Positions 23,078-64,000 of a DNA stretch of 64,000 nt are shown here, in pieces. The notes below the pieces were generated by a model that was given only the letters and a program-made list of their open reading frames with translations, was not told where the DNA came from and did no database searches. Position numbers and translations under genes: made by a program. Position 1 is the stretch's first letter. The number at the start of each line of letters is the position of its first letter. Source of the DNA: Macrostomum hystrix (lineage: Eukaryota; Animalia; Platyhelminthes); the NCBI GenBank assembly GCA_950097015.1, contig CATNEN010000008.1:248001-312000 (forward strand), given 5' to 3'.

Positions 23078-23111
<34 letters not shown>

Positions 23112-27573: not shown

Positions 27574-27840
<267 letters not shown>

Positions 27841-32060: not shown

Positions 32061-32582
32061 CTATAAAACATCCTTGCGAGACTTCATAGGTGGCAGCCTT
32101 AAGTAATTTAGCTGTGACAAAATATCTATAGCGGTACTTGACAGTCTTGTACAATGAGCCCAGTAGACCTTGATGAACTTCTCCCAGACGCCGCTCATCT
32201 CGATGGCGTCGCCCACGCTGGCATCGGCGAAGTCCAGCATGCTGCAGCGAGCCTCGGCCCGGTTGAACAGAGCCGCCCGGCACTCCCAGCGGGCAGCGCA
32301 CAGGCGAACGCAGAGCAGCCTTCGCTGCACCGACTGCAGCTCCGTGTTGCAGTAGTAGGGCGTGATCTCGACCAGCTGCAAGAAGCTGGCTCTACGAAAG
32401 GGGCCGCTGTTCGGCGTCGTCACGGGCTGGCAGACGAAGCCGAACAAAAAGTCCGAGCGGAACTCGCAGAGTCTGCCGGTTTCCAGGCCCAGCATGTCGT
32501 CTGAGCTGTCCATGCTGTTGGGTGCGTCTGGCCTCGAATCCTTGCTCGGTACAATGAACTCGCAAAAAGTCCTTGCGACCAA
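32061..32582 (-). pseudogene. CTLD-PAN family copy 1: orphan exon 2, degraded 5' end, stop lost (TGA>TGG at 32160-32162)
   Basis: PAN block FVCQPVTTPNSGPFRRASFLQ...WEKFIKVY reads through; no exon 1 lies between it and copy 2. Confidence 0.75.
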
Positions 32583-34564
32583 TGCGTGTGTATTTTCTGT
32601 ATATAGCAGTCTCAGGATTTTTTATTTTAAAGCTAAACATGCATATTGAAAGAAAGTAACAATCACTGACGCGTGACACGATATAATTGTATTGTTTGAA
32701 ATGGGTCGAGGGAGGAAGGCGAGCCAATTTTCAGAAGCGGGTGTATGTATTAGAGAATTTTTCAGTGCTTACTTATACCCTCCTGATGAATCTTTATGAA
32801 GTGCCTACTGCAGTTGTGGAATACAGCTTCAAACAAGTTGCGTCTCATTTTCAGCGGCTTCACTAGTCTTATCCTGCTGCCTCCACTCAAATCTACCGCA
32901 CCTGACTGTGAGAATGCACGACAGATGCGGCTGCGGAATGCACGCAATTAGATAGTATACCTACTGAATGTATCTAATGCTTCTGGAGCATGTCTCTCAG
33001 TGAGGCATATCAGCCAAAATCGATGCAGTACAACCAAAATTGGCCCAGATGCGAATTTTCTACAGAAAAAAACTCAAAAATACTGCTCTGGTAGATTGTC
33101 ACAGGGGTTTTAAGCTTAGAAAATGATCGTCAGAAACTCTTACTAAATCTGACATCCACCTATACTAAATCTCTAATCACTATTGTTGTCTTTGTCTTTG
33201 TCTAAAATCCTGTGACACTCGCGTTGTCAATTTGGCTGCCCAGGTTGTTTATTAAGCAACACCCCTGAGCAACGCCTTGATCAACTATAGGTAGACATGG
33301 ATAAGGACGTAGACATTCGTATGAGGACGAGGACGATAAGGACGAGTAAGGACTCGTATATATGGACTCTCCTAGTGTCACAGACAAAATTGTAGAGTGG
33401 TAAAATAAAATATTAGTCAAGATTAAAACAATGAAGGATTGAAAGCTTCACCGTCAGGTGCAACTGTTAACGTATCATTAATATCACGCGGGTTCTCAAC
33501 TGAAATTATCTGCCTCTAGAAAGTCAGGATTGATTAACTGCATCTGAACTTGACTTTCTAAGTGATCTGAGTTCAACGAATCATAGCATGGCACGGATTC
33601 CAACTTACAATTCTTAATTAACTGCCTTTCAAATTCGGACGATCCTGAGGATGCCGTTTGCAAGCGATGCTTAAAGTGACCTAAAATGTAGAATATTCAG
33701 CATCTTCTTAGTTTATTTGTTTCATTTCTTAGACAACTTTTTTATTAATTGGACGGCAATTTATGATTCCTGTCAATGAAATTCTACATTCTAATGGGCT
33801 ATCTGGGCTATCTGGGCTTTTAAGTATCGATGTTGAACACTGACAACAATACCTACCCAATTTTATCGACGTTGCGTAGCATAAAATCCCTACCAAGAGC
33901 CACAAGAGAGCAGATGTTTATTTACGGACAACAGTTTCTAGATTCGTGACGCAATATTTTGGGTTCTTTCTGAGCGACAAAGTGCGACTTATATTAGAAA
34001 CACAATCCCTTCGATCCCTTCCCTTTTTCCATATTGCTTTTTGCTACCAGCATGCATTTTCTAGAACTGTTTCGAATGCGACCAAATTATCATATGCAGT
34101 TTTTTCGTTCCGTAATCATTTTATTATGAACTGCAATACACCAGGCTAGGATTTATGACAATGAAAAAATAATCAAAACAAAGGCAATAAATTACTTGTA
34201 GTTGTTAATCACATACAAAATATATTAAACTCTTGTCGTAGAACTCTGATGCAAGTACTCAGTGTACAAGATCAGTTATTACAGAAGTTGTAACAAAGAG
34301 TGGTCCAATTAAAAAAATAATGCAAACAAGGAGAAAAAGCAACCTCAAGATTGCTTAGGATTGCTCAGAATTGAGATCTGTTTTATTTCTTAACGCCGAC
34401 TAAATCAAGTAAAGTATGAATGAGAATCACGCGCTATGGTTCCATATCTGACATCCTTCCGAAAGTTCATAGGTTAGGATAGGCGTTAAGTTAGTAAGCG
34501 GCGATAAATATTGCAGGATAGCTCTGCATCAGTGAGCGGTATTTGACCGTAATGTAAAATGAGC

Positions 34565-35527
34565 TCAGTAGACCTTGACGAACTTCTCCCAGCTGCCGCT
34601 CTTCTCGATGGCGTCGCCGACGCTGGCATCGGCGAAGTCCAGCATGCGGCAGCGAGCCTCGGCCCGGTTGAACAGAGCCGCCCGGCACTCCCAGCGGGCA
34701 GCGCACAGGCGAACGCAGAGCAGCTTGGGCTGCACCGACTGCAGCTCCGTGTAGCAGTAGTAGGGCGTGATGTCGCCCAGCTGCAGGAAGCTGGCTCGAC
34801 GGAAGGTGCCGCTGTTCGGCGTCGCCACAGGCTGGCAGACGAAGCCGACCAATGAGAGAAATCGCAAATCGTTCAAACCGCCCCCTTGAAGAGCTAGCAG
34901 GTCTTCCGAGCTGTCCAAGTTGTTTGGTCTGTTCGTCCACCAGTCCGAGTCAAAGACAACCAACCTGCTGCCGTTGGCCATTTGCCAGCCGACTCTGAGC
35001 AGAGGAAATAATTTGTTACTGCGAGTTAGAGCTGGACAAAAGTGTGCGTTCTCATATGCTTTTCAAGAATTTCGATGTACCCTTCGCTTAAACATACTTT
35101 ATCTGTTGGTGTCACTGTCTGCGTTCATAGCGACACTCGAATTTGTCAACGTACGAACGAAGCTTCTGTTTTCCCAGATTGAAATTGTGTCAGAGCGCAG
35201 CAAAAGTCAATCGTTTAATCATCACAATTTCCAGAAGGCTAACCTGCTGCTGCTCCGCTCCTCCAGCATGTCGGTGACGCCGACCCACAGAATCAGCGTT
35301 GTGTTAGAGAAGGACGCTGCAGCCCGAATGGCGGCCGGCTCCATCACCAGCTCGCCGCGAGCCTCCAGGCACAGACGGGCTGCCTGGCACCAGTTGACTG
35401 TGGCTGTGGTGTTCACGAGCAGGCAGAAGCCGGACACGGACTGGAAGGGCGGCTGGCAGGACTGCAGGCTGTGCGGACAGGCGAGGAGGCTCAGCACCCC
35501 CAGGAGGACCGTGATAGTCGTCGACAT
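34565..35527 (-). CDS. Secreted C-type-lectin + PAN/Apple protein, copy 2, intact, 237 aa; exons 35527-35244, 34994-34565
   Basis: Hydrophobic signal peptide, CQPPFQSVSGFC/WCQAARLC/LWVG/GW/W..NRPNN/FVC CTLD motifs, then a C-x3-C-x5-C PAN pattern. Phase-2 GT-AG intron; 714 nt CDS. Confidence 0.85.
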
Positions 35528-35560
35528 CTCGACAAAGACACGGGGAGTGCCCGCGCAACG

Positions 35561-35782
35561 CTCAGGCTATTTGTCCACCGTCACTCTTCTCGCCTCGCTC
35601 AGGCTATTTGTCTACCGTCACTCTTCTCGCCTCGCTCAGGCTATTTGTCCACCGTCACTCTTCTCGCCTCGCTCAGGCTATTTGTCCACCGTCACTCTTC
35701 TCGCCTCGCTCAGGCTATTTGTCTACCGTCACTCTTCTCGCCTCGCTCAGGCTATTTGTCCACCGTCAATCTTCTCGCCTCG
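35561..35782. repeat. 37-bp tandem repeat x6 immediately upstream of the copy 2 ATG
   Basis: Unit ctcaggctatttgtc(c/t)accgtcactcttctcgcctcg. Confidence 0.95.
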
Positions 35783-35986
35783 CTCGTGTTATTTATCAGA
35801 ATCAAAACTGCCTAGCGTCGTCAAGGCAACAGACAGACGCTGAGCGTGAATTTTCATTTGGTTCTTTTCTATTGGCTCATTTTGATGCCAAATAAAATGA
35901 CACCATTCATTGCTCTAAGCAAATTTGTCGAGAAGACGACGAATTTGGGCAAACAACTTTTTCATAAAATGCATTACTAATCATAC

Positions 35987-36170
35987 TACGAGGGGTGTCA
36001 GGAAAGTTCTGATACGTTTTCTGGAGGATGACAATCGTTTCTCGGTTTCAGATATGGCTGACATGCTGCAGATTCCAAGGTCTACGATCTACGATTGCGT
36101 GGCGAGCATGGACCTTGTGACGCTGAGTACTCGCTGAGTCCCAAGGCTGCTCACTACGGAGCTGATTTGT
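35987..36170 (+). mobile_element. Mariner-type transposon relic (TIR + internally deleted transposase fragment)
   Basis: TA-CGAGGGGTGTCAGGAAAG TIR-like start, then FLEDDNRFSVSDMADMLQIPRSTIY...STR*VPRLLT (HTH and WVPxxL motif with W>stop). Confidence 0.65.
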
Positions 36171-36943: not shown

Positions 36944-37810
36944 ATGCGCACTCGGCGTAGCATGCTAAGAGTGAAGGTGAGGGAATTCCACAATGCTGGA
37001 GGCGCTACCAAGCAATTTGAGGCTATCGAGGAAGCTGATCTAACAAAGTTGCGAGCATATTTCGATGGAAGTACCGCTGAGAAGTTGCAGGATGAGGTAT
37101 TGTTCACCATTATGTACGTTTTTGGAGAGCGTGGGCAAGAGCACATGCCGGCACTGAAGGCAGCAAGCAGTCTGTTGATGAAGGTGGATGCTGATGGCAG
37201 ACCCTATATGTCGCTTCCAATACTGCCTACGAAAAATCAAAGTTCCGATCCTACGCGTTGTAAGGACGTCAGCTCGAAGCAAGCTAGGCTGTATGGGAAG
37301 CAGCAGGACCTGGTGAATAAATACATTTCGCTTCTCCCATCGGATCGCAAGGACGACTGCTTGTTCCCAAGAGCACTACCGAATGACAAGACGACGGGTT
37401 GTCTGCGTTTCTCATCTCAGCAGGTACGTGGCATCAATTGGTTTACCTCACTGATGAAACGGCTTAGCAAGCAGTGTAGTCTATCTCGAGAGTATACAAA
37501 TCATTGCATACGGGTGACGCGAATCGCGGACTTGCACGAGACTGGCCATGGAATGAACGATATCATGTGCATCACCGGTCAGAAGAGCGAAAGAACGGTG
37601 CGCCGATATCTAGCAAGGAAGCGCGACCGCGCAGTTTTTGAAGCGTCGACGGCTGTAAGCGGCGCCTTAGAGCGTCCTATCGAGGTTCCCAAGCAATCGA
37701 ACGGCGTAAACATGTCGTGCATTGAGACAGGTGTCGACGGTATCTCACCTGTCGAAGTCAAGCCGGCTAATGAAGTGCATCTTTCAAGTGGTAAGTTTAT
37801 GAGTAATTAA
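36944..37810 (+). mobile_element. Crypton-like tyrosine recombinase ORF (DUF3504-type), N-terminus apparently decayed
   Basis: AIEEADLTKL, FGERGQE (R), TKN (K), YTNHCIR (HxxR), ITGQKS (H>Q), VRRY (Y). The upstream out-of-frame KTSLISSVEGNDRLY resembles the Crypton N-terminal region. Confidence 0.75.
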
Positions 37811-38160
37811 ATGAATGTTTATTTATCAGAAAATGGTTTTCGGTGAATAAATGTGCCTTTGGTACCAAAACAGTTTCGCTTTCAATTATTGCAGTGAGGA
37901 ACACCCAGGCACAAGTGTCTCGTATTTTCGAAAATTGCCGGTTTGAAAACTGCACGTTTAATTTCGGGGTGAGTAAGTAATAGGCGTCTTTGACATGTGC
38001 AGTAACGTTGATAGGCAGTGACATTCAATTGCTCCTGTTCTGGTTTTGTGTTCATGGTTATTTAATGCATGGATGAATGTAGCTTTCTGCAAGCTAAAAG
38101 AGCCTACGAGCAAGCAAATGAATGCAAAATAGAAAAATGCATGCAATCGGAGCTTCTCTG

Positions 38161-38280
38161 CTAGTAATCTATGGCAAAAACGGTGTCAAAGCGTCAAGCA
38201 AGTGAATCCTTCAAGCACGCATTTCAGTACATGCTTTTCTTGTTTGACGCTTTGACACGGTTTTTGCCATAGACTACTAG
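38161..38280. repeat. Palindrome with 42-bp arms (3 mismatches) and weaker outer symmetry to ~38085-38340
   Basis: ctagtaatctatggcaaaaacggtgtcaaagcgtcaagcaag ... cttgtttgacgctttgacacggtttttgccatagactactag. Confidence 0.9.
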
Positions 38281-39925: not shown

Positions 39926-41372
39926 CACTCAGCCACATTGAAAAGTTTCCACCCTAGCGCGCGAAGGGGCAACGTTTTGGTCTGTGGAGATATTCGTGGT
40001 TTGAGCCATAGACAAATATATAATCCGGAATCGACCGAAGCAAAGGAACAGCAAAGAAACAAAGTACGCGAGCATGGGTGACAACTCGCCCAGAACAGGG
40101 TCAGTAACGCGTATAGCAGCCACGTGAGTGCAGCAGAGCGCTCACTCTCCGGGGCATCCCCAGAACCAGGTGTCGCAGAAAATCTTGCGGTAGTTGTTGC
40201 CATGCAGTAGACAGTGATTCGCGCAGTTGGGCAACATTTTGCGGCGGATTGTCGCGCCGAATCGAGCGCTTCAGGTAATCCCAAACGTGCTCTATGGGAT
40301 TCATGTCCGGTGATCGGGACGGCCAGCGCAAGGTTCGCAGGTGCAGCAGCTCCTTCAGATGCGCCACAGCGGCTGCGCGATGCGGTGGGGCGTTGTCGTC
40401 TTGGAGGACGCAGTTCCCCACGCCACCACATGAAACATCAATGAAGGGCAGCAGGCGCGTCTGTAGAAGGTTGGCGTACGACTCGGCAGTCACAGTCGCA
40501 TCCAGGAACACGAGCTCCGTCTTCGCGTGCATTGTGATGCCTGCCCACACGTGAATAGAAGCTGACTGGCTCTCAGAGTTTTGCACGTGCTGCGGCAGCA
40601 TCTCCTGGCGCGGCTGGCGCCACACGCGAATGCGGCCGTCGGCACGGAACAATCGAAAGCGGCTCTCATCTGTGAAAATCACTCGCCGCCACTGCTGCTG
40701 CCTCCAGTGGACCCTTTGCATTGCCCATTGTTCCCGGCTGGCCACATGGGTTGGGGTCAGGCGTGACCGTTTGCGCATCTTACGGGATCGCAGCCCCGAC
40801 TCCCGCAATCGTCGTCGGATGGTTTGGGCGCTCAGGACATTCCCTCGCCTGCTTCTTTCAGCCCACATCAGCCGTAGCAGGGTGGCTGGCAATGTGGGGC
40901 TTCCCTTTACCATTCGCAGCAATCGCCGGTCCGCCCTCCTAGTTGTACTGCGCATATTGAGCCGCAGGCCGCGCGTGGCGTGCGCCACGCTGCCCGTTTC
41001 TCTGCACTTGATCTGCAGTTTGCGGATTGCTGTGTGTGACTGCCCAATTTGGCGAGCAACAGCTCGGATGGACATCCCAGCGTCCAGCATGCCAATGGCG
41101 CGCGCTCGTTCCAGGTCGGTCATTTGGCGAACCATTGCGTTCGGTTGCGAACGTGGATTTTAGACTCCTGTAAGATGCTGCTGTCTGCTCCATGTGACTG
41201 TTTCCTTCGACTTGTCTGGCATCTATGACCCAAGTTTTTGAATTCTATGGCCCAAGTGCGTGTTGACGAAATCATCAATCGTCTATGGCACAAGTCTGGC
41301 GACAAAAACCAGTTTTGAAACTCTAAATATACAACTTGCGCGAGGGTGGAAACTTTTCAATGTTGCTGAGTG
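39926..41372 (-). mobile_element. Tc1-family transposon, intact; transposase 41135-40101 (344 aa, DD34E)
   Basis: TIRs cactcagc(c/a)acattgaaaagtttccaccct with flanking TA at 39924-25 and 41373-74. Motifs FTDESRF, QDDNAPPH, SPDMNPIE; 34 residues between the second D and E. Confidence 0.95.
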
Positions 41373-41754: not shown

Positions 41755-43070
41755 CACTCAGCAACATTGAAAAGTTTCCACCCTAGCGCGCGAAGCGTCA
41801 ACGTTTTGGTGGGTGGAGATATTAGTGGTTTGAGCCATAGACAAATATAAAATCCGGATTCGAACGAAGCAAACGAACAGCAAAGAAATTACGCGAGCAT
41901 CTGGTGCCAACTGGCCCAGAACAGGGTCAGTAACGCGTATAGCAGCAGAGCGCACACTCTCCGGGCATACCCACAACCAGGCGTCGCAGAAAATCTTGCG
42001 GTAGCTGTTGCCATGCAGTAGACAGTGATTCGCGGTAGACAGTGATTCCGAAGTAGTCAGTCCTTCAGATGCACCACAGCGGCTGCGCGATGCGGTGGGG
42101 CGTTGTCGTCTTGGAGGACGCTGTTCCCCACGCTACCACATGAAGCATCAATGAAGGGCAGCAGCGTCTTTAGAAGGTTGGCTTGGCAAAAAAATTGGCA
42201 AATACGACTCGGCAGTCACAGTCGCATCCAGGAACACAAGCTCCGTCTTTGCGTGCATTGTGATGCCTGCCCACACGTGAATAGAAGCTGACTGGCTCTC
42301 TGAGTTTTGCACGTGCTGCGGCAGCATCTCCTGGCGTGGCTGGCGCCACACGCGAATGCGGCCGTCGGCACGGAACAATCGAAAGCGGCTCTCATCCGAG
42401 AAAATCACTCGCCGCCACTGCTGCTGCCTCCACTGGACCCTTTGCATTGCCCATTGTTGCCGGCTGGCCACATGGGTTGGGGTCAGGCGTGGCCGTTTGC
42501 GCATCTTACGGGATCACAGCCCCAACTCCCGCTATTGTCGTCGGATGGTTTGGGCGCTCAGAAATCCCCTCGCCTGCTTCTTTCAGCCCACATCAGCCGT
42601 AGCAGGGTGGCTGGCAATGTGGGGCTTCCATTCGACATTCGCAGCAATCGCCGGTCCGCCCTCCTAGTTGTACTGCGCAAATTGAGCCGCCGGCCGGCTA
42701 GCGCCACGCTGCCAGTTTCTCTGCACTTGATCTGCAGTTTGCGGATTGCTGTGCGAGACCGCCCAATTTGGCGAGTAATAGCTCGGATGGACACCCCAGC
42801 GTCCAGCATGCCAACGGCGCGCGCTTGTTCCAGGTCGGTCATTTGGCGAACCATTCCGTTTGGTTGCGAACGTGGATCATAGACTCCTGTAAGCTGACTG
42901 CTGTCTGCTACATGCGAATGTTTCCTTCGACTTGTCTGGCGTCTATGGCCCAAGTGCGTGTTGACGAAATCATCAATCGTCTATGGCACAAGTCTGGCGA
43001 CAAAAACCAGTTTTGAAACTCTAAATATACAACTTGCGCGAGGGTGGAAACTTTTCAATGTTGCTGAGTG
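41755..43070 (-). mobile_element. Second Tc1 copy, defective (frameshifts, internal deletion)
   Basis: Same TIRs with TA flanks; the transposase is split over several frames. Confidence 0.92.
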
Positions 43071-43161: not shown

Positions 43162-43996
43162 ATGTCGGCCTCCATCACAATATGTCTAGCACTTGGGATG
43201 CTGCTCGCCTGTCCGCACAGCCTGCAGTCCTGCCAGACGCCCTTCCAGTCCGTGTCCGGCTTCTGCCTGCTCGTGAACACCACAGCCGCAGTCGGCTGGT
43301 GCCAGGCAGCCCGTCTGTGCCAGGAGGCTCGCGGCGAGCTGGGGATGGAGCTGGCCGCCATTCGGGATGCTGCGCCGAATTCAACCGACACCGCATTGTG
43401 GGTCGGTATCACTGATCTTTTGGAAGAACAGCTCACCAACAGGTTTATGTTTGTTTTGTTGAAATGATCCGACAATATTTTAGTGTTTTTAAGTAGCGTA
43501 TTTTTGGTCCGAAAATCTGGGTTTTGTAAGCCGTGAAGACCAATGCTTTCGACACCTCTTTTAATATCTGAAATAATCCTGAAATTACAGGATGGCGCAT
43601 GGTCAACGGAAGCGAGTTCATTGCACCGAGCACCGATTGGCACCCTAAAACACCCAACAACGTGGACAGCTCAGACGACATGCTGGGTCTGCAAAACGGC
43701 AGACTCTGTGACTTCCGCTCGGACTTTTTGTTAAGCTTCGTCTGCCAGCCCGTGGCGACGCCGAACAGCGGCACCTTCCGTCGAGCCAGCTTCCTGCAGC
43801 TGGGCGACATCACGCCCTACTACTGCTACACGGAGCTGCAGTCGGTGCAGCGAAGGCTGCTCTGCGTTCGCCTGTGCGCTGCCCGCTGGGAGTGCCGGGC
43901 GGCTCTGTTCAACCGGGCCGAGGCTTCGCCGATGCCAGCGTCGGTGACGCCATCGAGAAGAGCGGCGTCTGGGAGAAGTTCGTCAAGGTCTACTGA
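43162..43996 (+). pseudogene. CTLD-PAN copy 3; exon 1 43162-43442, exon 2 ~43591-43996
   Basis: The only nearby acceptor AG is out of frame, and a 19-nt deletion (cgctgccgcatgctggact) near 43926 frameshifts the PAN end. Confidence 0.8.
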
Positions 43997-45079: not shown

Positions 45080-45205
45080 AACTCCCGCTGCATCAGCGAG
45101 CATCAACCTGCGTTACGACTGCACCTCCGTGCAGCAGTAGTAGTGCAAGATGTTGCCATCTGCAGCAAGCTGGCACGACGGATGGTGGCGCTGTTCGGCG
45201 TTCGG
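45080..45205 (-). pseudogene. Heavily decayed relic of the CTLD-PAN exon 2
   Basis: cgactgcacctccgtgcagcagtagtagtgcaagatgttgccatctgcagcaagctggcacgacggatggtggcgctgttcggcg aligns to the PAN block of the other copies. Confidence 0.65.
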
Positions 45206-45698: not shown

Positions 45699-48600
45699 GC
45701 TCGCACCGGCGGGACACGCCTGTGAGGTATGAGTCAGACCAGGCCCACGGGCTAAGGTCTGCGATGCCTCACACCTGCAGTCGCTTTTTGAGCAGGCTTG
45801 GCAGGAAGGAGCCCTGTGCCTTCGGGTGCAGGAATCCCTCCACGCTGTCCCGTCAGCTGACCCATGGGTACACGTCCCGCGAGTGTTCAAGGCTGACCCT
45901 AGGGCAGCCGGACAGAATGGGCAACAGCGCTGGATGACCCATCCAGGGCCTCCGGCCAAACTGGGTACCTCTAGCCCTGGCTGGAGGGAAAGGTGTCACC
46001 CTTTGACCTTAACAGGGTATGCGGCCAGTCCGCAGCGTTCGTGCACCTGTGCGTGATCAGGTACCTCTGGCTACGGCTCTGAGGGAAAGGTGTCACCCTT
46101 TGACCTTAACAGGGTATGCGGCCAGTCCGCAGCTTTCGTGCACCTGTGCGTGATCAGGTACCTCTGGCTACGGCTCTGAGGGAAAGGTGTCACCCTTTGA
46201 CCTTAACAGGGTATGCGGCCAGTCCGCAGCTTTCGTGCACCTGTGCGTGATCAGGTACCTCTGGCTACGGCTCTGAGGGAAAGGTGTCACCCTTTGACCT
46301 TAACAGGGTATGTGGCCAGTCCGCAGCTTTCGTGCACCTGTGCGTGATCAGGTACCTCTGGCTACGGCTCTGAGGGACAGGTGTCACCCTTCGACCTCAA
46401 CAGGGTACGCAGCCAGTCTGCGGGCCTGGCACTGCTCTAGGTGTCCTCTTATGCCTGAGGTCTCACCGCGCTGAGGGGCTGAAAGGTCCAGGGAGTCTAT
46501 CCGGCCATTAGCGGTTTTTATTTTTATTTTTTCTTTCTCTTCTTTCCAGCGACCTATGGAGTCCCACTATAGCTCCAGCACGTCCCAGGACCCTGCTGAA
46601 ACGCTGACCCCGGCCGGCGACGCAGATCCTCAGGACCAGCGCCAGGGCGACACCGGTTCCACCGGCGCCCAAAATCCATCCTGCTCTTCCGCCACTCAGG
46701 AAAACACCAGAGCGGCTGGATCAAAGAGCAAACGCTCCCCTTCCACGCAAGCCCGCAGCTTCGCCCGCCTCCAGGAATTCCGGCGGCGTAAACAGGAAGT
46801 ACGGTTGGCTGCGAAATCCGCGCCAACCACCGCCTCCGAGGAGGGGGCCGGCAACTCTGCGAACATCGCGGAGGAACCGGCACCCAACAAGGAGGCGGAC
46901 TCCTCGCGCCGTCCGAGAAACCCGGAAGCGCGGAAAAGTGCCGCCCAGGCCTCTGGGGAGTCCGGTTCCTCTCGCGGCGGAACCTCTCACAGTCATCCGG
47001 AAACTCCGACGACTGCTGGGGGCCCGTTGCGGGAGGCGCCGGCCAAACCACAAGGCCAAAGCGCACTTACGCTGCTATGGCAAAGAGGCAGCCGGCCTTG
47101 GTTATCCGAGGCCAGGAGACGCCCCTCTCAACAGCGCAACTCGACCAGATCTGGCGCAGATTGGATTCCCATCTGGTCAAACTGGCACTGAGCGGCACTG
47201 TGCTGCACGTCCTGAAGACCGACATCCAGGACCAAGCCCTCATTGTCCAGCCTGCCGACAACCAGTCCGGACAGCAACTCCTCGAGATGCTGAAATCCTT
47301 CGACTGGGGCACGGAAATGGGCAACCTGTTTATCTACAGGGAGGACGAGCGCCCCCAGACACACCGTCATCGTGTTTGGATCCCAGCTCGCAGCGCCATC
47401 ACCAACGCCGGAGAACTGCGTCGCCTGCTGTTGGCAATCCACCCGGATCTGCCAGCAAACGGTGTCGTGGTTCATGAAACCATCACCAGATCTGGTGGAG
47501 ACGGTTTCACGGCCATCCTAGGATTGTCGGACAGCTGGATGCTCCGCTGCCCAGACATGTCCTACATCAGTGCAGGCCTCACTCGAATGCAGATTTTCAG
47601 CTTCGAGTCCGATGCCACTCGCCCGCCGCCCCCGGAAAAGCGGAAACGGACGGACCAGAGCTCTGCCGGGCCCCTGCGCCCTGGAACACAGACTCCTGGT
47701 CGTCACGACCACTCCGAGGATGCGGACCCTATCAGGGGCAAAGCCGCGCGAGCCGCAACGACAGGCGGACGTGGTAAGGGCCGGAAACCCGCCCGCAACA
47801 CCATCCGTACTGGCCTGACTCAGCGCGCCAGAGAGCTGTCGGACCCCAACAGTGGACGCCACAGCAGCACCCCCCGGCCCAATGTTTCATCGGAACCCCC
47901 GGCGGAAAACCGGGCTGAGGATACGGACGCCGCTGTTGCGGCAGCCCCGGCCTCAGCTCTGGATCCGATTCAGGAGGAACCGATGGAGCTCGGGCAAAAC
48001 ACCGGCGAGGACGAGGAATCGCTCCTGAACAACTCGCCGTAGGCCAGCAGATAGCCGCACGGACCGCCCCTCCTGGGGTGAGCTTCCTGCAGCTGAACCT
48101 GCACCACTACATCGCGGCCTCGACCAACCTGGCGCGTGTGGTGGACTTCGAAAAACCGGGCATCATCCTCCTCCAAGAGCTCTGGACGAAGAAAGGTAAG
48201 ATTCCGAACATTCCTGCAGGTTTTGACTGTTTTTTCATGCCCCAAAACCCCAGGGCTGCTGTGTTCGCGACTACCGATCTCAAAGCTTGGTATAGACCAG
48301 ACCTCTCTGACAAAGACCTCTGTGTCATCCAAACCAACCACATTCTCCCGAACCGCACCGTCATCATCGCCTCTATCTACATTCCTGGTGACGGTCCTGC
48401 GGTTCCGCCCAGTCTCACTTCCCTCGTGGACTACTGCTCAGACCGCGACTTTGAGCTGCTGGTGGCAGGCGACATTAACGCCCACCACACCCACTGTGGC
48501 AGTGTTACTTCAAACTGCAGAGGCGAGGATCTCCTTGCCTACATCTGCACCACCGATATTGAGTTCTGCAACTCGGGTGGCACACCCACCTTCGACAATG

Positions 48601-51600
48601 GGCGATGGACGGAGGTCCTTGACACCAACCTCGCCTCTCAGGGCCTGATCCCTCTGATCAGGAACTGGCAGGTGTGGGACGAAGAGGAATCTCTGTCTGA
48701 CCATCGCTTCATTCGTTTCCGGCTGCAAAGCTCCTACTCCAAGCCTGGTATTCTGTGGAAAAGGAACACCCGGAATACTGACTGGACGGCCTTTGCGGAA
48801 TCCGTGAAGCGCCAAACCAACCAGTTAGAACCCGTTGTTCCTGCCACCTGTCAAGAAGTGGACGACCTGGCTGATCTACTCAGCATGACCATCTTGACAG
48901 CTCATGAAACCTCTTGCCCCCTTAAAGCCTACAAAGGCAAAAAATCCGCTCCCTGGTGGAACCCAGCGCTTGGAACCCTCCGGCGCAAGGCCAAATCCCT
49001 CCAGCGGATTGCGCGAAAAAGCAAGGACCAAGCTGACCTGACCGCCTACCAGAATGCGATTCGCGACTTTAAGCGTGACACCAGGAAAGCGAAGTCCGAA
49101 AAGTGGCGCCAATACTGCTCCAAGCTGGAGGGCGCCCGCCCAACTTCTCGCGTTGTAAAAGCGCTCACTCTTGACAAAATGTCGAAGCTCTCAGTGATCA
49201 AAAGACCGGACGGCCGGCTTGCTGAGAATCCTGGCGAATCGCTCGACATCATGCTCGCCAGCGCTTTCCCTCAGACTGCGCCGCTTCAGGACCCGCCGGA
49301 CCACACTCCGGGCGGACACATCCTTGCGACAACTATTATCACTAGAGAACGGACAGCTCGCGCTGCTAATTCCTTCTCGCCTTTTAAGTCGCCTGGACCT
49401 GACAACATTTACCCCGCCTTCCTTCATGAAGCGGTGAAAAATGACAGGTTCCTCGGCCTCCTTTGCAACCTGTTCAAGGCCTGTATCACCCTCGGGTACG
49501 TACCCAGGTCTTGGCAGGAAGCCACTATCGTCTTCATCCCCAAACCTGGGAAGGGAGACTACCATTCCGCCAAAGCCTTCCGCCCCATCAGCTTAACATC
49601 CTTCTTTCTTAAGCTGCTTGAAAGGCTTGTTCTTTGGCGCCTCCTTCACGTTGAGCTGAGGAACTCCCCGCTCTCCGCCAACCAGCACGCTTTTCGATCC
49701 GGACGTTCCATCGAAAGTGCTCTGCATGCCATTGTCGACAAGCTGGAGCGCGCCGTGCTTGGCACCGGTTTTGCTCTCGATTCCTCGACATTGATGGTGC
49801 CTTCGACAATGTGCTTTTCGGAGCCTTTAGGCGAGCCCTGGAACGCCGGGCTACGCACGAGCACCTCACCCGCTGGATCATGTATATGATCTCTCACCGA
49901 ACTGCCACCTCGCACCTGCTTGGCCACTCCCGTTCTGTGAATGTCCAGAAGGGAGGCCCGCAGGGTGGCATTCTCAGTCCGATCCTTTGGAACCTTGTCA
50001 TGGACGAGCTGCTCTGCAGCCCTGACCCGGACCCGGTCCAAAAAATCGGCTATGCTGACGACGTCACCGCCACCGTGGCCGGACCGTCTCCCCCGGTTCT
50101 TAGAGACCATTTGCAAGCTTTCATCCACCGTGCCGAGCGCTGGGCCCATAGCTGCGGCCTCAAACTCTCTGAGTCCAAGACCGTCGCCATTATGTTCACC
50201 AGCAAACGAAACTGGAGGATTGAGCCTCTCCTTCTCTATGACAAACCCATCGCCATGGAGAAGCAAACCAGATGCTTAGGTGTCATCCTCGACCACAGGT
50301 TGAGCTGGACACCTCACGTCAAATTCAAAACCCGCAAAGCTCTTGCGACGCTCGCGCAGATCCGCAGAGCCTTCGGCGCCACCTGGGGCCTCACCCCCCG
50401 CCGTCTCTGGTGGATTTACACTACCATTGTAAGACCGGCCATCTCTTTTGCCGGCTTCATCTGGAATAGTGCCCTGGAGACCAAAGGGGTCCTGGAGGCC
50501 CTAAACAAGGTGCAGGGCCGTGCTTGTCGAGCCATCATGAGTGCGGCACCCTCCACTCCCTTCGCTGGCATGAATGCCTTCCTGGACCTTCCCCCTTTAG
50601 ATCTTTTTATCAAGGGGGAAGCGATAAAGACGGCTCGTCGTCTTCTGGACGCGGGCATCTCCATCCGGAAGCAACTTGCCTTCAGCAAGCGGAACCTCCA
50701 GCCCCATGGCGACCTCAGCCTACGGGACCTGGACGCAGCAGGAGGTCTCAAAATTCTCTCAGACGGAATCCCGTCGACGCTGTGCCCACCGCTAAAATTC
50801 AAAACCAGCATTCCGCCTCGCCAGGAAGTACGTGACCACGGCCAACCCCGTGAAATTCACTGCTTCACCGACGGATCGCAAATCAACTCGGTCTCTGGTT
50901 TCGGCTACTGCATTATGTCCGGAGGGAAAACTGTGGCGACCTTCTCCCAGCACACCGGCATAAACTCTACCGTTTTCCAGAACGAAGTTCTCGCCATCAG
51001 CTCCTGCGCCCTGGAGCTGATCAACCAAAACGTCCACGGAGCAGAAATCTTCCTCCACTCGGACAGCCAGGCGGCGATCCATGCCCTTGGACGCACGCAC
51101 ACCTGCTCGCGCACAGTCCTCGACTGCGTCGCGCAACTCAACCGCTTAGGGACCCACAACAAGGTGTCCCTAAGGTGGATTCCAGGGCACTCTGGCCACC
51201 CTGGTAACGAATTGGCCGACAGCCTCGCCAAGGCCGGTTCGACGGGTTCGCTTTTTGGCCCCGTGCCTGCGGTCTCCACCCCTACCGCCGTCGTCAACAC
51301 CCGGATTAACCAGTGGGTGACCTCTAAGCACAAGGACAGATGGATCAATACCGCCGATTGTCGGCAGTCTCGCGCTGCTGTCCCTTGTCCCTCCACTGCC
51401 CTTCGCAAAGCCTTGCTTGGACTGAACCGCAAGGACATCAGGGCAGTTACCATGGCCCTCTCTGGCCATGGCTGTTTCGCCAGGCACCGCTTCCTGCAGG
51501 GCAAAATCCGCAGTGAGGAATGCCCCTTCTGCCTCTCCTATGTTGAGGATGCAGAGCATTTTATTTGCGACTGCCCCGCCTTCACTCAGGACAGGCTCAC

Positions 51601-51871
51601 CTATCTCGGCCCAAACCCGGATCTCCCCGACGTTTTCAGGCCTGAGAACATCTGCCAGCTCGTCCGATACCTGAGGGCCACCGGGCGAGCAACCCTCCAC
51701 CTCCTGGACTCTCCGGAGGAGGACCGCGCTGCGGACGCCGGCACCACCGGATCCCCCTGCGCGACACCGCAGCTTTAGTTGCCCGTGGTCGCCAGGGGCT
51801 AGCGGAATGGGCGGCAACGCCTCCCCGCTGCATCCGGAAGATGCCCCCTGCAGCGAAGTTAAGTTAAGTTA
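45699..51871 (+). mobile_element. Near-full-length non-LTR retrotransposon (APE-RT-RNase H-CCHC, LOA/R1-like); ORF1 46556-48042 and ORF2 48078-51778, each with one -1 frameshift
   Basis: APE: FLQLNLHH, GDINAHH, SDHRFI. RT: [21 protein letters not shown]. RNase H: FTDGS, NEVLAI, SDSQAA, WIPGHSG..GNE.AD. C-terminal [14 protein letters not shown]. (AAGTT)n tail. Candidate 14-bp TSD agtgtc(t/a)gcttgtt at 45685-45698 and 51872-51885. Confidence 0.88.
45984..46420 (+). repeat. 97-bp tandem monomers (~4.5 copies) in the LINE 5' UTR
   Basis: Unit starts at 45984, 46081, 46178, 46275 and 46372. Confidence 0.95.
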
Positions 51872-53651: not shown

Positions 53652-55369
53652 TCAGTAGACCTTGACGAACTTCTCCCAGACGCCGCTCTTCTCGATGGCG
53701 TCGCCGACGCTGGCATCGGCGAAGTCCAGCATGCGGCAGCGAGCCTCGGCCCGGTTGAACAGAGCCGCCCGGCACTCCCAGCGGGCAGCGCACAGGCGAA
53801 CGCAGAGCAGCCTTCGCTGCACCGACTGCAGCTCCGTGTAGCAGTAGTAGGGCGTGATGTCGCCCAGCTGCAGGAAGCTGGCTCGACGGAAGGTGCCGCT
53901 GTTCGGCGTCGCCACGGGCTGGCAGACGAAGCCTAACAAAAAATTCGAGCGAAAGTCGCAGAGGCGGCCGCTCTGCAGACCCAGCATGTCGTCTGAGCTG
54001 TCCACGTTGTTGGGTGTGTCAGGGTGCCAATCGGTGCTCGGTGCAATGAACTCACTTCCGTTCGCCATGCGCCAGCCGGTCCTGGGGTGTAAAAGTCGTA
54101 TGACAGCCAAATTTCAGTTTGGCATGAAGTTTCAAGACCTGAAATATTATGCATGTGTTTTAATTCTTTCGTATTGTCGGCCGTTCGCCAACGCGGTAGT
54201 GGGGGTTCGGGTACGGACCGCCCAAAGCTTGCCGGGGGTAGAGGGGGGGAAGCAGCGACCCTCGAGGCGTCCAGACACTCCGAGGAGAGACGGGATGGAC
54301 TTGGTGCGTACCGACACTCGCTAAGCCCTGACTGAAGGTTTTGACTGCGAGCGGGTAGCCACTTGACAGCCCAAGAGAGAGGTAGATGATGGTCTGGAAG
54401 CGTACCGACACTTCGCAGACTCGAGGAAGACTCTGGAGGAGAAGGATGATGGTGAGTTTTTGGCAGCAGCCGAGGCTGGGCAGAGGAATAAGATTCGATA
54501 ATAAAGAAATAAATAACGCGTGAAAGCTTTTCTTACCGGGAGGGGTTGAACGTTGAACTCATGCAATAAATTGTGCTTCAGGCTGCGTCGTTTATTATGG
54601 ATTCTACTTTCTAATGTTGTATTAGCTTCGCCAACGTTCTCGCCCTAGTACTCTGGAGGCGCGGGGGCTGGCTACGGGCACCGCGCGCAAATAAATAACA
54701 GCGTGGGGTGGGGCGAGGGCATAGGGCTGGACGGGGTAGGGCTAAGCCACGCAGGGCTGGGGTGGTAGCAAACAGGGCTGGGCTGGGGTCGGCTGCAAGC
54801 CGAGAGAGAGAGAAGGAGACCGGCTAGCCAATCAGAAGCCTCCTTGGCGAGAGGCCTGATTGGACTAGCGAGGACGGCACAGGGGACAGCCAATGGGCGA
54901 ATGACAAACACGCCAACGGAGGGTGGCCTAAGCCGGGGCCGGGCAGAACCGGATTGAGCAGGCGGCCGGGGTGGAGGGGTGGAGACGCAGGGGTCGGGGC
55001 AAGGTCGTTATGAGACGCAGCTCACAACACATGTACGTTCTGTTCACTGTGTTTAGAGTATGTCTGCAGTAAATTTCAAACCTGTTGGTAAGTCGCTCCT
55101 CCAGCATGTCGGTGACACCGATCCACAGTATGACGGACCTGTTTGAGAAGGGCGCAGCAGCCCGAATGGCCGACGGCTCCATCGCCAGCTCGCCGCGAGC
55201 CTCTTGGCACAGACGGGCTGCCTGGCACCAGCCGACTGCGGCTGTGGTGTTCACGAGCAGGCAGAAGCCGGACACGGACTGGAAGGGCGGCTGGCAGGAC
55301 AGCAGGCTGTGTGTGTGTACAGGCGAGCAGACTCAGCACGAACAAAAGGATCGGAATAGGTAATGACAT
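53652..55369 (-). pseudogene. CTLD-PAN copy 4; exons 55369-55082 and 54081-53652; +4 frameshift from an (AC)5 run
   Basis: Exon 1 is 288 nt against 284 in intact copies; exon 2 is intact (430 nt). Confidence 0.8.
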
Positions 55370-58391: not shown

Positions 58392-59507
58392 TCAGTAGAC
58401 CTTGACGAACTTCTCCCAGCTGCCGCTCTTCTCGATGGCGTCGCCGACGCTGGCATCGGCGAAGTCTATCATGCGGCAGCGAGCCTCGGCCCGGTTGAAC
58501 AGAGCCGCCCGGCACTCCCACCGGGCAGCGCACAGGCGAACGCAGAGCAGCCTTCGATGCACCGACTGCAGCTCCGTGTAGCAGTAGTAGGGCGTGATGT
58601 CGCCCAGCTGCAGGAAGCTGGCTCGACGGAAGGTGCCGCTGTTCGGCGTCGCTACGGGCTGGCAAACGAAGCCCACAAATGAGTTGTTTCGAAAGTCGCA
58701 CAGGAAACCGCTCAATAAAGCCAGCATGTCATCCGAGCTGCCCCAGTTATTGGGCATTTCTGCTCCCCAGTCCGACTTCGAGGCGATGAACTCGCTTCCG
58801 TTCGCCATGCGCCAGCCGATTCTACAGTGAGTTGCCATGCGGAAATACAGTTTAGTCATCTTTAGGACTACCTTGGTTTGCCCTTGCTTAGCTGTACTTC
58901 TTCGAGTCTTGAATTGAATTCACACTTTTTGCAGCTAGGCTCTCAGAACATTGGGTGTCCGACTCATGTCGAAAGTCGGACACCTGGTTGTATGTGTCGC
59001 AATGTTGGACCCTGTAAAACGCTTTAAATTTAACTCACCTTTCATGGATTTTTCGGGACGATTGTAACTAAACTTCTAACTAAGCACTCTTACCTGGTAC
59101 GCTTCAAAGGCTTCCTTAACTTAGAAAATCTAGCGTAGAGCCGCCAAGCAATAGGTTACCGACAAGTATATATAAAAGGCAGCAGTTGCGAATTAGCAAA
59201 TGAACAGATCAGCCATGTCTGACCTGCTAGTCATCCGCTCCTCCAGCATGTCGGTGACACCGACCCACAGAAAGACGGAGCTTGTTGAATAGGACGCAGC
59301 AGCCCGAATGGCGGACGGCTCCATCGCCAGCTCGCCGCGAGCCTCCTGGCACAGTCGGGCTGCCTGGCACCAGCTGACTGCGGCTGTGGCATTCACGAGC
59401 AGGCAGAAGCCGGACACGGACTGGAAGGGCGGCTGGCAGGACTGCAGGCTGTGCGGACAGGCGAGCAGCAGCGAAAGTCCGAGAAAGATTCTGATCGGCG
59501 CCGACAT
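58392..59507 (-). CDS. CTLD-PAN copy 5, intact, 237 aa; exons 59507-59224, 58821-58392
   Basis: 284+430 nt exons, GT-AG intron, no stops. Confidence 0.85.
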
Positions 59508-60622
59508 CCACTGTGTTTGTCTTTACGCTTTGTCCTTTGCCTGTAGAAGCGAAATTTATTGTTCCATCTTTGCCAAGTCTTTCTTCGACGAGATGGAAAT
59601 TTGATCTGAGTTTTGCTGCTTTATTTTGCATTTGCATTTTATAGTCTTTGTCAGCCAATGAGAGTGCGCTGGCCATCGTGTTTCTTTGGTTTGGACCATC
59701 AATCCTTTGTAGACTTTAATGAATATCACATTATTGCCAAGTTGGGCAGTGGCGCAGTGAAGCTAGCCTCCATTATGCGCACAGCCCCGTGAGAAGAACC
59801 TAAAGAGAACTCTAAAGTAGTAGACGCCAATGTAAACTGTATTAGATAGGTAACAATACCTGTGACAGAGCATTCCACTCAGCACGAAACACGAAGGCCC
59901 CTCAGTCATTTGTATTGAGTCATGCGAATTATGACGAAAGCTAGCCTCTTGAAGGCCTCTTCCTCCAGGGCCAGGTACCTGGGAAGCATCGCAGACGATT
60001 GCTCCGATTTGAGCCAAATCAAAGATGGGAATTATCCGCCACTGCATCAATGCTCTTTAGACAACCTTATAGAACTTGTTCTGCAATTTCTGTACTCAGG
60101 AATACAAAAATAGGATGCTAAAGCATATATACTACTGGAAATAGTGTGCAACGACGTTGTTTTAGTGTGAATTATTTGATTTTGAAAATTTCTTAAGAAA
60201 TTGCGACAGGACGACTAAGCGGTTACGGTTGGAAATATAAATCTGAAAACGGAACCCAATGATATTCAGCAAGCACGGCCCAAAACATGACACAATGCAT
60301 GATACACTATACACAATGCATTCGAAACAGAAATATAACATGTGTTTCGTGAATTCTATTTATCGCTAGCATATTTCTCAAAATTGACAACCCGACCTCA
60401 ATTGGTGTGAATCCATTAAAACCAAAGGCACAGCAAAAACTACCTGCACAAACGGCCAGCAAATGAAAGGCACAGAGGGGACAGAAGTCATTTCAGTTCT
60501 ATTGGCTGGCTCAGCAGAGGACTGAAGAGGCTAGGCTAGGCAATCATAAGCATGCAAGTTTCAATAAATTCGACTCATTGCGGGGCCATCAGTTCAAGCA
60601 CCTGGGATTTGCTGCAGAAAAA

Positions 60623-61855
60623 ATGTCAGCGCCGATGGCCGTCCTCCTGGCGGTGCTGAGCCTCCTCGCTTGTCTGCACAGCCTGCAGTCCTGCCAGCCG
60701 CCCTTCCAGTCCGTGTCCGGCCTCTGCCTGCTCGTGAACACCACAGCCGCAGTCAGCTGGTGCCAGGCAGCCCGTCTGTGCCAGGAGGCTCGCGGCGAGC
60801 TGGCGATGGAGCCGGCTGCCATTCGGGCTGCTGCGCCCTATTCAACAAGCTCCGTCTTGCTGTGGGTCGGTGTCACCGACATGCTGGAGGAACGGACGAC
60901 CAGCAGGTTTGACGTCGCTGATCTGTTCTTTGGCTGATTCGCTACTGAAATAGCTGAACCTCAGCGCAGTAAATGTTAATCAGCAGTTTTAATAGCAAAT
61001 AAAGCTTTTCAATTGTCGCGACTTCCTTGCATTTTGCCCTGGTTCTCCTGATCTCAGTGTGCTGGATCCTTGTTCTGATCAGAATTTCGTGTTGCACCTG
61101 CTAATCTTCTCTAGTTTTGTGAGTTGTTAAAAAAGACTCAAAAGCAGCACTATTAGCTATGCTTTTAACTTTCAGAGCATAGAGTCGATACTACATGTTA
61201 ATGTACTTGAGTACATTATAAACACTCAATTGAATCGTGAGTGTTTTAGTTGTCATTGCTAATTCTCATTTCGCAATTTTATAAGAATGAATGACAGATT
61301 TAGAACGCAAACGCTTTTTGCTTGAGTCTGAAGAGTGACTGGCCAAGTTCCCATGGCGGTGTAAATCCACATTCAACACTCCTAACACTGAATTAAGCTT
61401 GACTTCAACGTCTACATGTCATCAGGAAAGGCTGGCGCATGACCAACGGGAGCCAGTTCGTGGTCCTGGACACCGACTGGTCAGTGAACTCGCCAAACAA
61501 TGCGGACAGCTCCGATGACATGCTGGCTTTTAACATCAACGGACTATTAGATTTTAGGAGTATCAGTCTGTGTGGCTTCGTCTGCCAGCCCGTGGCGACG
61601 CCGAACAGCGGCACCTTCCGTCGAGCCAGCTTCCTGCAGCTGGGCGACATCACGCCCTACTACTGCTACACGGAGCTGCAGTCGGTGCAGCCCAAGCTGC
61701 TCTGCGTTCGCCTGTGCGCTGCCCGCTGGGAGTGCCGGGCGGCTCTGTTCAACCGGGCCGAGGCTCGCTGCCGCATGCTGGACTTCACCGATGCCAGCGT
61801 CGGCGACGCCATCGAGAAGAGCGGCGCCTGGGAGAAGTTCGTCAAGGTCTACTGA
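60623..61855 (+). CDS. CTLD-PAN copy 6, intact, 237 aa; exons 60623-60906, 61426-61855
   Basis: 284+430 nt exons, GT-AG intron, no stops. Confidence 0.85.
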
Positions 61856-62460
61856 GCTCATTGTATAGGATAGTCAAATACTGCTAGGAAGCAGCACTGA
61901 GCAGTCCTACAATATTTGTCACAGCTTACTAATCAAACGGTACCACCTATGAGCCTATGCCATAAGAATGATAGACACGGTGTTAACTAGTTCGCGTGGA
62001 GACGATGACCATGTCTATTTCACTGCACAAATCAGAAGTGTTCGTTTTTTCAAGCAGCATAAAGAAATATAAATTTCAATACCTTTTTGCACATTTTCGC
62101 ACGCACACAAACTGTTCTTTTTTAGATAGAATGCATTAACAATTGTCTGTCTGGGTAAAAAGGATTGGGGAAGAGTTGTGTTACAGTATGATGGCGTTGT
62201 CCTTAGGTCAAAGATTGCCAATCAAAATAATTTTAGAGCGAGCGGGTGCAATCAGTCACTAAGTCAATCAAAACAGTTAATAGCAACTTCTCACGGCCGT
62301 CCTGTCGTCATCGCGTTAACAAAAATGATACAGAGCCCTGACAATCCATGCTGAGAGATTTGAGGCTTATAAAACATAAAAAACCCTCTTAATTCGAAAC
62401 AAGAAACTATTTGATAGTTTTATCATCGGTGCGGGGGGGGTCGGGATGCCGCAGTTCAAA

Positions 62461-64000
62461 ATGTCGGCACCGATCGCGGCTCTAATTTCCGTGCTGAGCC
62501 TGCTCGCCTGTCCGCACAGCCTGCAGTCCTGCCAGCCGCCCTTCCAGTCCGTGTCCGGCTTCTGCCTGCTCGTGAACACCACAGCCGCAGTCCACTGGTG
62601 CCAGGCAGCCGGTCTGTGCCTGGAGGCTCGCCGCGAGCTGGCGATGGAGCCGGCCGCCATTCGGGCTGCTGCGCCCTTAGCAACAAACACCGCGATCCTG
62701 CTTTTAGCGTCATCGTCATGATCGGCGTCACCGACATGCTGGAGGAGCGGAACGTAGACAGGTCAGCTGACAGGTCAGCTGTCAGCTGAAAAACAAATCA
62801 CGGAAGGGATTGCAGAACTGCTAGAATTTTATTACCTCATTAGGCTTGCATGGAACGTCAATAAAAACATGACATATTCACTTTGGAATTGTGAAGCTGA
62901 AGCCTGGGCGTCCAGTTAGTTTTGACTAGTTGTAGCTAGTTATCTTCGCCGTTAAGAGCGAATTAGCTGCTCAAGGCAAGCAAAACACGATATCAAAAAA
63001 AGTTAAATTTCTGTTTTCTTCTAGCCGGCGTCAATCAGGAGTTTCAGTGCCTTTTTACAGTGGGACTACGAAGCCATATTTCGCCTGTTTTTATACCAAG
63101 GAGGGATTTTTCCCTGTCCGAAAAAATGCGAAACATTTTTGGCAGCGCCTGAATGCCAACAGCGTTTGGGTGGTGACTGATTGGTTGACAGACTAGGCGA
63201 TGGTGTCCTGTGAGCTGCGCCTAATATTTAGGCTTGGTCAGTGAAATTGGAGAAATTCGCGTCAGGGTGTCCATATTGGCCTAATTTCACCTGTTGTAGC
63301 CCTAAAGGTCGGTGACCACCGAAGACGGAGATGATGCAGGCACATTCGGGTGACATGCTGATGAATTTTGAAGGCCTGGCAAGGCCGCACTGAGGCGCAG
63401 CGCTAATTCTTGTATAGGGGTGTGCGAAATACACTAGCGCTTAAGGGAAAAATCAGACCTTCGGCCAGAACCATTGAATATCTCGACGGTCTGAAGAGCT
63501 GGCGACTTGTTTCTTGAGTTTCGTGAAATGTGTCGAGTTGATGACCGGGCCTTTCAGTTTTATGAGACGAAAAATGACGGATTTAATGATAATCACTGAT
63601 TGAGCGAATTTTCGCTTTTAAACCATGTTTCATTGTTCGTCCGAGTACGTTAGTATTCAAATATTTTCTAAATTTTACTATTAAATATTGATTAAAATGC
63701 AAACGAATTATTCCGCTAACAGGCGTCAAAGCCTCAATCAATCGATTTTTGAGCTTGGAGTAAGGAGGTTTTAGTTTTTAAAATCTTTCCACAAACGACA
63801 GAATTCAATTACGCAGACGTCAATAAAAAACAGTTTCAAGTCTTAAAGTGACTCATTCTTTTTTATTAACCTTGAACTAAAAGCAAATTGTTCATTTTGC
63901 GACTTACAAACAGAACCGGCTGGCGAATGGCCAACTGAAGCCAGTTCGTGGTCCCTGACACCGACTGGTCAGTGAACTCGCCAAACAATGCGGACAGCTC
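62461..64000 (+). pseudogene. CTLD-PAN copy 7; exon 1 62461-62761 (frameshifted), exon 2 from 63914 runs off the window
   Basis: Apparent 1-bp deletion near cccttagc (~62675) and an in-frame TGA at 63936-63938 replacing Gly. Confidence 0.75.
63193..63525. repeat. Dispersed repeat copy (same family as 1-400), in the copy 7 intron
   Basis: Long shared blocks with 1-400. Confidence 0.85.

Follow-up and report, generated by a model that had tools for sequence, protein, structure and literature searches.

Concerted evolution confined to two coding blocks as the probable source of the constant-frame, variable-loop pattern in a flatworm family of lectin-PAN genes

A 64,000-nucleotide stretch of the genome of the flatworm Macrostomum hystrix (contig CATNEN010000008.1, positions 248,001 to 312,000; G000:C8:248001-312000), hereafter called the window and used for all coordinates given below, contains a cluster of genes for predicted secreted proteins in which a C-type lectin-like domain (CTLD) is followed by a PAN/apple domain. 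These proteins combine an almost constant framework and PAN part with a segment that differs strongly from copy to copy, and a preliminary description of the locus had taken this pattern for a recognition repertoire under diversifying selection. The question raised by the locus is whether the contrast between constant and variable parts was produced by selection on the protein or by a process acting on the DNA. The explanation that we favour, and that we regard, taken as a whole, as probable, has three components. The family is large and lineage-restricted in flatworms, and its typical product would be a protein of about 237 amino acids with a signal peptide (from which secretion is predicted), a CTLD and a PAN/apple domain. 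Two coding blocks would have been homogenised by ectopic gene conversion between old copies. Finally, the combination of constant framework and hypervariable loop would result mainly from this region-limited concerted evolution, rather than from demonstrable positive selection.

A blastn search with the exons of copy B, together with explicit gene models, gave seven copies (A to G) and an 87-nucleotide (nt) relic in the window, in the orientations -,-,+,-,-,+,+, exactly as had been described before. They are as follows.

32161..32556 (approximate), minus strand: copy A, a relic of exon 2 only, with the variable segment and the PAN part, lacking exon 1 and the acceptor site (blastn, translation)
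34565..35527, minus strand: copy B, intact; exon 1 at 35527-35244, intron of 249 nt, exon 2 at 34994-34565 (gene model)
43162..43996, plus strand: copy C, broken; exon 1 at 43162-43442, exon 2 at 43591-43996 (gene model)
45116..45201, minus strand: PAN relic of 87 nt, corresponding to nt 173-259 of exon 2 with 86% identity (blastn)
53652..55369, minus strand: copy D, broken; exon 1 at 55369-55082, intron of 1000 nt, exon 2 at 54081-53652, intact (gene model)
58392..59507, minus strand: copy E, intact; exon 1 at 59507-59224, intron of 402 nt, exon 2 at 58821-58392 (gene model)
60623..61855, plus strand: copy F, intact; exon 1 at 60623-60906, intron of 519 nt, exon 2 at 61426-61855 (gene model)
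62461..64000 and past the window end, plus strand: copy G, broken; exon 1 at 62461-62761, exon 2 from 63914, the remainder being read in locus L005

The intact copies, B, E and F, each have coding exons of exactly 284 and 430 nt, separated by a phase-2 GT-AG intron of 249, 402 and 519 nt, respectively. The exon lengths given previously for intact copies were therefore correct for these three genes. The other four of the seven (A, C, D and G) are defective, which had been noticed only in part. Copy A has lost its stop codon (TGA to TGG), copy C carries a 5-nt deletion at the start of exon 2 and a 19-nt deletion in PAN, copy D has a 4-nt insertion (ACAC) that shifts the frame in the signal-peptide region of exon 1, and copy G contains a 17-nt insertion in exon 1 and an in-frame TGA in exon 2. 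The array continues just beyond the window with copy H (locus L002), and close kin were found 190 kb away (copy I, locus L007) and on another contig (copy J, locus L008). A search of the whole genome (220 Mb) gave at least 102 matches to the family, many of them intronless single open reading frames (ORFs) of about 240-290 amino acids. Copies E and F are arranged head to head with 1.1 kb between their start codons (59507-60623) and may share a bidirectional promoter.

Within the genes, homogenised and divergent segments follow one another, as listed here with copy B as the example and with the PAN block of three other copies.

35315..35485, minus strand: framework block FW1 of copy B, homogenised (exon 1 nt 43-213)
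34847..34966, minus strand: variable segment V2 of copy B (exon 2 codons 10-49)
34565..34846, minus strand: PAN block of copy B, homogenised (from GFVCQP to the stop codon)
53652-53933: PAN block of copy D
58392-58673: PAN block of copy E
61574-61855: PAN block of copy F

The two homogenised blocks measure about 170 nt (framework) and about 280 nt (PAN), and the divergent stretches between the blocks are the signal peptide, a short patch that we call V1, the intron and V2. The latter is made of three parts: the xPNN loop, called V2a; an island of conserved DSSDD; and the strand equivalent to the one with the WND motif, called V2b.

We determined the divergence of each segment by pairwise Nei-Gojobori (NG86) counts in the five non-redundant intact genes, dropping the codon that is split by the intron. 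The proportions of synonymous (pS) and nonsynonymous (pN) differences were 0.66 and 0.41 in V2, versus 0.054 and 0.028 in the PAN block and 0.13 and 0.057 in FW1, in agreement with the earlier remark that the constant parts are nearly identical even at synonymous sites. Third positions were variable in 35 of 38 cases in V2, versus 11 of 93 in PAN (Fisher p = 1e-18). At the nucleotide level, the PAN block was 94-100% identical among nine full-length copies (91-97% for copy A, the most diverged one), and FW1 was 88-98% identical between copies. The introns ranged from 98 to 1152 nt in length across copies, and neither the introns nor the 400-nt flanks could be aligned between copies, save in one recent pair and for a few short stubs. 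With unalignable introns and flanks and a saturated V2, we therefore conclude that the copies are old throughout, and that it is the two constant blocks that are young.

Evidence on how the blocks stay young came from the pseudogenes. The PAN block of the broken copies C, D and G was found to be as homogenised as that of the intact genes, and only the truncated relic A drifts (92-97% identity). The near-invariance of silent sites and the homogenisation of pseudogenes indicate that the identity of the blocks is due to gene conversion and not to purifying selection; purifying selection alone, considered as a cause, is ruled out on these same two grounds. The constancy of framework and PAN is real, but the view that purifying selection alone maintains it had to be given up, since conversion at the nucleotide level homogenises pseudogenes as well. 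The GC content at third positions (GC3) was 0.90 in PAN, versus 0.64 in V2 and 0.57-0.68 in the neighbouring genes, a rise of the kind that GC-biased conversion would produce.

Mosaicism was observed both inside the blocks and between segments. All four gametes were present within PAN, at sites 266 and 400, and the nearest relatives of a copy changed from segment to segment. Copies F and G were 96% identical in V2a and 51% in V2b, and copies D and C 96% and 82%, respectively. Copy F is itself a mosaic: its V1 is 93% like that of E, its V2a is like that of G, and its V2b is unique. Copies B and H, which are 32 kb apart in inverted orientation and have unrelated flanks, share a single tract of 948 bp that is 98.3% identical, extends from nt 17 of the coding sequence to 1 nt past the stop codon and includes the intron. 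A second cluster, on another contig, showed the same trend, in a weaker form.

The sequence of events that we propose starts from old duplicates, in which FW1 and PAN would have been overwritten again and again by ectopic (i.e. non-allelic) conversion. This overwriting would keep the blocks nearly identical at silent sites too and would raise their GC3. The signal peptide, V1, the intron and V2 would remain anciently divergent, and these stretches would be moved only occasionally, as cassettes, when a conversion tract happens to begin and end in homogenised blocks.

As to the identity of the variable segment, we searched the exon products separately and put full-length questions to intronless paralogs from the same genome. 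Pfam gave no match for the exon 1 product alone, and its Lectin_C model (PF00059) matched neither the window exon products taken apart nor the close intronless paralogs L011 and L019. The same model scored above its cut-off (22.6 bits) on the more distant intronless paralogs L034 (32.7), L048 (25.7) and L043 (24.3), all three of which match the window exon 2 with E values of 1e-12 to 1e-16. A profile made from 35 family sequences and searched against PDB retrieved the carbohydrate-recognition domain (CRD) of DC-SIGN at E 1e-13, with xPNN aligned with EPNN and l-a-D with WND. An AlphaFold2 (AF2) model of paralog L011 (pLDDT 89.9, pTM 0.83) was matched by Foldseek to DC-SIGN, mincle, CL-11 and CD23 at a probability of 1.0, with TM scores on the target of 0.66-0.79. 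The outer-disulfide and WIGL-type motifs WCQAARLC, WVGVTD and GFVCQ were present in all window copies, and the outer-disulfide cysteines were invariant in the 35 paralogs.

The window copies depart from canonical lectins at two places. Both inner-disulfide cysteines are absent, the copies having DDM/L-L and D-F/L-R-S/N versus DC and D..C in the distant paralogs and in DC-SIGN. At Ca2+ site 2, they read [R/T/M/S/A]PN(N/S)...DD...[N/C/L/W/T]D versus EPNN...EDC...WND in DC-SIGN. Thus, the Glu of EPN is gone from all window copies, the Asn of WND is replaced in most and the Asp of WND is kept; the site is incomplete, with three of its five ligands retained and two lost. The distant paralogs of the same genome keep EPN, EPS or EPD, as well as the inner disulfide. 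The preliminary description had quoted the substituted PN motifs and the missing inner-disulfide cysteine and had equated the variable stretch with the CTLD long loop (EPN) and the WND strand; the motifs are indeed found in the translations, both cysteines are missing, and the alignment with DC-SIGN leads to the same assignment. As judged from this alignment, V2 covers the canonical ligand-binding loop and strand of the CTLD, and ligands would presumably be bound through its surface. With the Glu of EPN replaced in all copies and the Asn of WND in most, classical sugar binding at Ca2+ site 2 is therefore doubtful, and classical Ca2+-dependent sugar recognition is probably not the function of this surface. 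Extra cysteines were also noted at variable positions of V2, in copies E, D, C and I (LCD), in F, G and J (xCGFVC), and in I (NCPNN). Their number is odd in several copies, a hint of intermolecular or non-canonical disulfides.

The C-terminal 93 amino acids of copy B (34568-34846, minus strand) were also modelled with AF2 (pLDDT 88). Nearly all of the top Foldseek matches of this model have PAN modules (HGF, plasminogen, SRK, MANEC, SML-2 and copper oxidase), and a structural comparison (VIA) gave Z scores of 7.7 to 6 and rmsd values of 2.5-3 Å over 67-75 amino acids. The best match was the N domain of HGF (Z 7.7, rmsd 2.5 Å, 70 of 93 amino acids), followed by plasminogen, factor XI, MIC4 and SML-2. 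The PAN core has four cysteines, spaced C-x3-C-x5-C-x11-C. Taken with the Lectin_C matches of the paralogs, the profile match to DC-SIGN and the L011 model, the fold predicted for copy B agrees with the order, CTLD then PAN, that had been proposed before. Two family-invariant cysteines are left unpaired by the canonical scheme and may form an interdomain bridge: in CTLD helix 1, the one that follows the Trp, and in PAN, the one of YC. The PAN domain could be the constant module by which the protein is attached or oligomerises.

Diversifying selection on the variable loop, as previously proposed, was not borne out at the level of the segment. The ratio of nonsynonymous to synonymous substitution rates (dN/dS) in V2 was 0.17-0.66 in pairwise NG86 comparisons where dS was finite and saturated, and 0.23-0.97 in less saturated pairs, most of which involve pseudogenes. 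No V2 pair had a dN/dS above 1 in these segment-level pairwise counts, in line with a pN lower than pS in this segment, and positive selection was not detected. In the tract shared by B and H, a count made by eye from the alignment gave about 5 replacement, 3 silent and 3 intronic changes since the event, i.e. a ratio near 0.6 calculated from very small numbers.

These values bear directly on the first alternative, which holds that the loops of a diversifying repertoire owe their diversity and its upkeep to positive or balancing selection, and the framework and PAN their constancy to purifying selection. The coincidence of the variable segment with the ligand-binding loop and strand of the CTLD would be explained, as would the high pN in V2 (0.41), the size, clustering and wealth of pseudogenes of a family resembling birth-and-death immune families, and the cassette mosaics, which generate new combinations of V1, V2a and V2b. 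Yet dN/dS is below 1 for every V2 pair, the constant blocks are present in pseudogenes too, and silent sites vary as much as they can in V2 and hardly at all in PAN, a contrast that protein-level purifying selection cannot bring about. We consider this alternative unlikely.

Several observations weigh against the conversion-based explanation or limit its parts. Synonymous saturation makes the dN/dS values of V2 imprecise, positive selection at a few sites may be masked by averaging over the whole segment, and no tree-based test is free of confounding by recombination. Furthermore, selection may be what keeps V2 from being overwritten, and such selection is inseparable here from the mechanical barrier formed by low homology. 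On the side of the domains, PAN_1 (PF00024) matched the window copies weakly, at 18.0-19.9 bits, under its gathering score of 21.4 (paralog L011, at 22.1 bits, was above it). The Z scores below 8 obtained with the PAN model are middling on the scale of the tool, though the list of matches is homogeneous. Finally, the model of the CTLD fold is that of a paralog with about 50% identity, rather than of the spliced product of the window's own genes.

A bolder alternative accepts conversion and gives it a purpose. The homogenised blocks would be kept as homology anchors for the exchange of V1, V2a and V2b between the intact genes and a reservoir of pseudogenes, which would make the locus a germline cassette-shuffling system (somatic in the boldest version) for a lectin-like recognition repertoire. 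Its logic would be comparable to that of the pseudogene-templated conversion of chicken antibody genes. We think it improbable.

It is quite improbable that the blocks are identical because of a nucleotide-level constraint (imposed, for instance, by an embedded RNA element or by an antisense product overlapping the blocks), or because of an artefact of assembly or polishing. Long antisense ORFs do run through the GC-rich PAN block, but such ORFs are expected by chance at a GC3 of 0.9. Furthermore, the variants in the blocks, some specific to one copy and others shared, form mosaic patterns, broken copies are equally conserved, GC3 is raised as biased conversion predicts, and the other cluster shows the same trend. 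Recent duplication followed by targeted hypermutation of the binding-loop segment, which would fit a pS and a pN that are both high in V2, low alongside and separated by sharp boundaries, was rejected as the least probable of all, because introns of 98-1152 nt and flanks that cannot be aligned mean that the copies are old throughout, while the truly recent pair B/H is 96-98% identical in V2, like the rest of its tract, and V2 cassettes are common to several copies.

The probable explanation thus remains region-limited conversion of old paralogs, and the locus is of interest in three respects. First, it documents an uncharacterised CTLD-PAN family of macrostomid flatworms, predicted to be secreted and greatly expanded: this genome of 220 Mb holds at least 100 of its loci. 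Second, it suggests that a constant frame with a hypervariable loop can arise through region-limited conversion of old paralogs without detectable positive selection, which calls for caution in scans that take such patterns as a sign of immune-type diversification. Third, the loss of a Ca2+ ligand, the loss of the inner disulfide and the possible interdomain disulfide make up a structural variant of the CTLD that can be tested. The family is a reasonable candidate for proteins that would serve recognition in the mucosa, the gut or the reproductive secretions of flatworms.

The other features of the window are two genes upstream of the lectin cluster and several mobile elements.

15829-16593, plus strand: TEAD exon, which encodes the TEA and YAP-binding domains
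20818-23455, plus strand: gene with an HMG box and long polyglutamine tracts
40104..41135, minus strand: intact Tc1/mariner transposase ORF of 344 amino acids (Pfam DDE_3 and HTH_Tnp_Tc3_2), not a member of the family
42148-42953, minus strand: second Tc1/mariner copy, broken
47077..51778, plus strand: non-LTR retrotransposon (LINE) separating copies C and D and encoding endonuclease, reverse transcriptase (RT) and RNase H (Pfam)

For the TEAD exon, the best relatives that bear a name are from Macrostomum lignano (45-74% identity). The two Tc1/mariner copies (repeats D5/D6) are 1.7 kb apart, within the cluster. ORF2 of the LINE is split in two frames, one with the endonuclease and RT and the next with RT and RNase H, and its ORF1 (321 amino acids) gave no Pfam match. 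A tandem array at 45887-46468, made of five to six copies of a 97-nt unit that are at most 99% identical, adjoins the PAN relic and lies just upstream of the LINE. The ORF at 36944-37810 (plus strand, 288 amino acids) had no Pfam match either; by eye, its C-terminal part looks tyrosine-recombinase- or Crypton-like. Long ORFs made of short tandem repeats (LSRVSSLPCLISPVSH-, WKFGILEVWDLGSLGS- and SIYL-type) at 2744-3181, 5400-6033, 20818-21300 and 27376-27846 are probably minisatellites rather than genes. In locus L008, the 639-nt intron of copy J, a gene on the minus strand, contains a tRNA-like stretch of the GGGGGCTGTGGCCTAGTGG...GGTTCGATTCC type at about 2090-2160 on the plus strand, which may belong to a tRNA-derived SINE.

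Relatives of the family were sought in public databases. When the exon 2 product and L011 served as queries, word-based protein searches gave no relatives, which is explained by the sensitivity of the tool, since an exhaustive profile search did find some. In the Macrostomum lignano entry A0A1I8HX01, a merged model that bears the annotation guanylate cyclase, residues 444-670 share 55% identity with the window exon 2 product, and the public relatives, which are about 240 amino acids at full length, are unnamed or wrongly named. The ESM Atlas listing provided two leads at the level of the listing itself, a Platyhelminthes cluster named 'Apple domain-containing protein' (score 0.96) and Mollusca clusters with Lectin_C and PAN_1 of about 231-246 amino acids (score 0.94). 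In the literature that we searched for a flatworm CTLD-PAN family, no description was found, and a survey of bivalve C-type lectins makes no mention of PAN. The family had been called unrecognised, and this holds in so far as no flatworm description was found, but not with respect to the unnamed or misnamed M. lignano relatives and the similar mollusc Lectin_C + PAN_1 protein clusters.

The family can finally be compared with known systems; its evolutionary mechanism and its domain family are both of known kinds, and what is newly documented is its members in flatworms. Uncharacterised spiralian proteins with Lectin_C and PAN_1 are similar in size and in their domains. In the snail Biomphalaria glabrata, the schistosome-resistance region LG11L contains gene models with PAN/Apple and C-lectin domains (PMC13712769); these models are described as PAN then C-lectin, the reverse of the order found in the window. 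With canonical Ca2+-dependent CRDs (DC-SIGN/CD209, mincle, collectins), the window family shares the fold and the core motifs, namely the N-terminal cysteine hairpin, the W..A...C helix 1, WxG.TD, GW..NG and the final FVC. In contrast to these CRDs, the window clade lacks the inner disulfide and the Glu of EPN, mostly has C, L, W or T in place of the Asn of WND, and carries a PAN domain fused at the C-terminal side. Its PAN domain resembles known PAN/apple modules (HGF N, the plasminogen N-terminal domain, factor XI apple, apicomplexan MIC4/SML-2) by its predicted fold, its weak PAN_1 match and its four-cysteine core, and differs from them by one extra family-invariant cysteine, in YC, whose partner may be the second cysteine of CTLD helix 1. 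As to the mode of evolution, two accounts report that, in the FREPs of Biomphalaria and the 185/333 genes of the sea urchin, conversion or recombination homogenises some parts and reshuffles the variable ones (PMC12074976, PMC1988830). The domains of these proteins are different from those of the window family. The window family is like FREPs and 185/333 in being tandemly arranged, rich in pseudogenes and, probably, subject to concerted evolution with mosaic variable parts.

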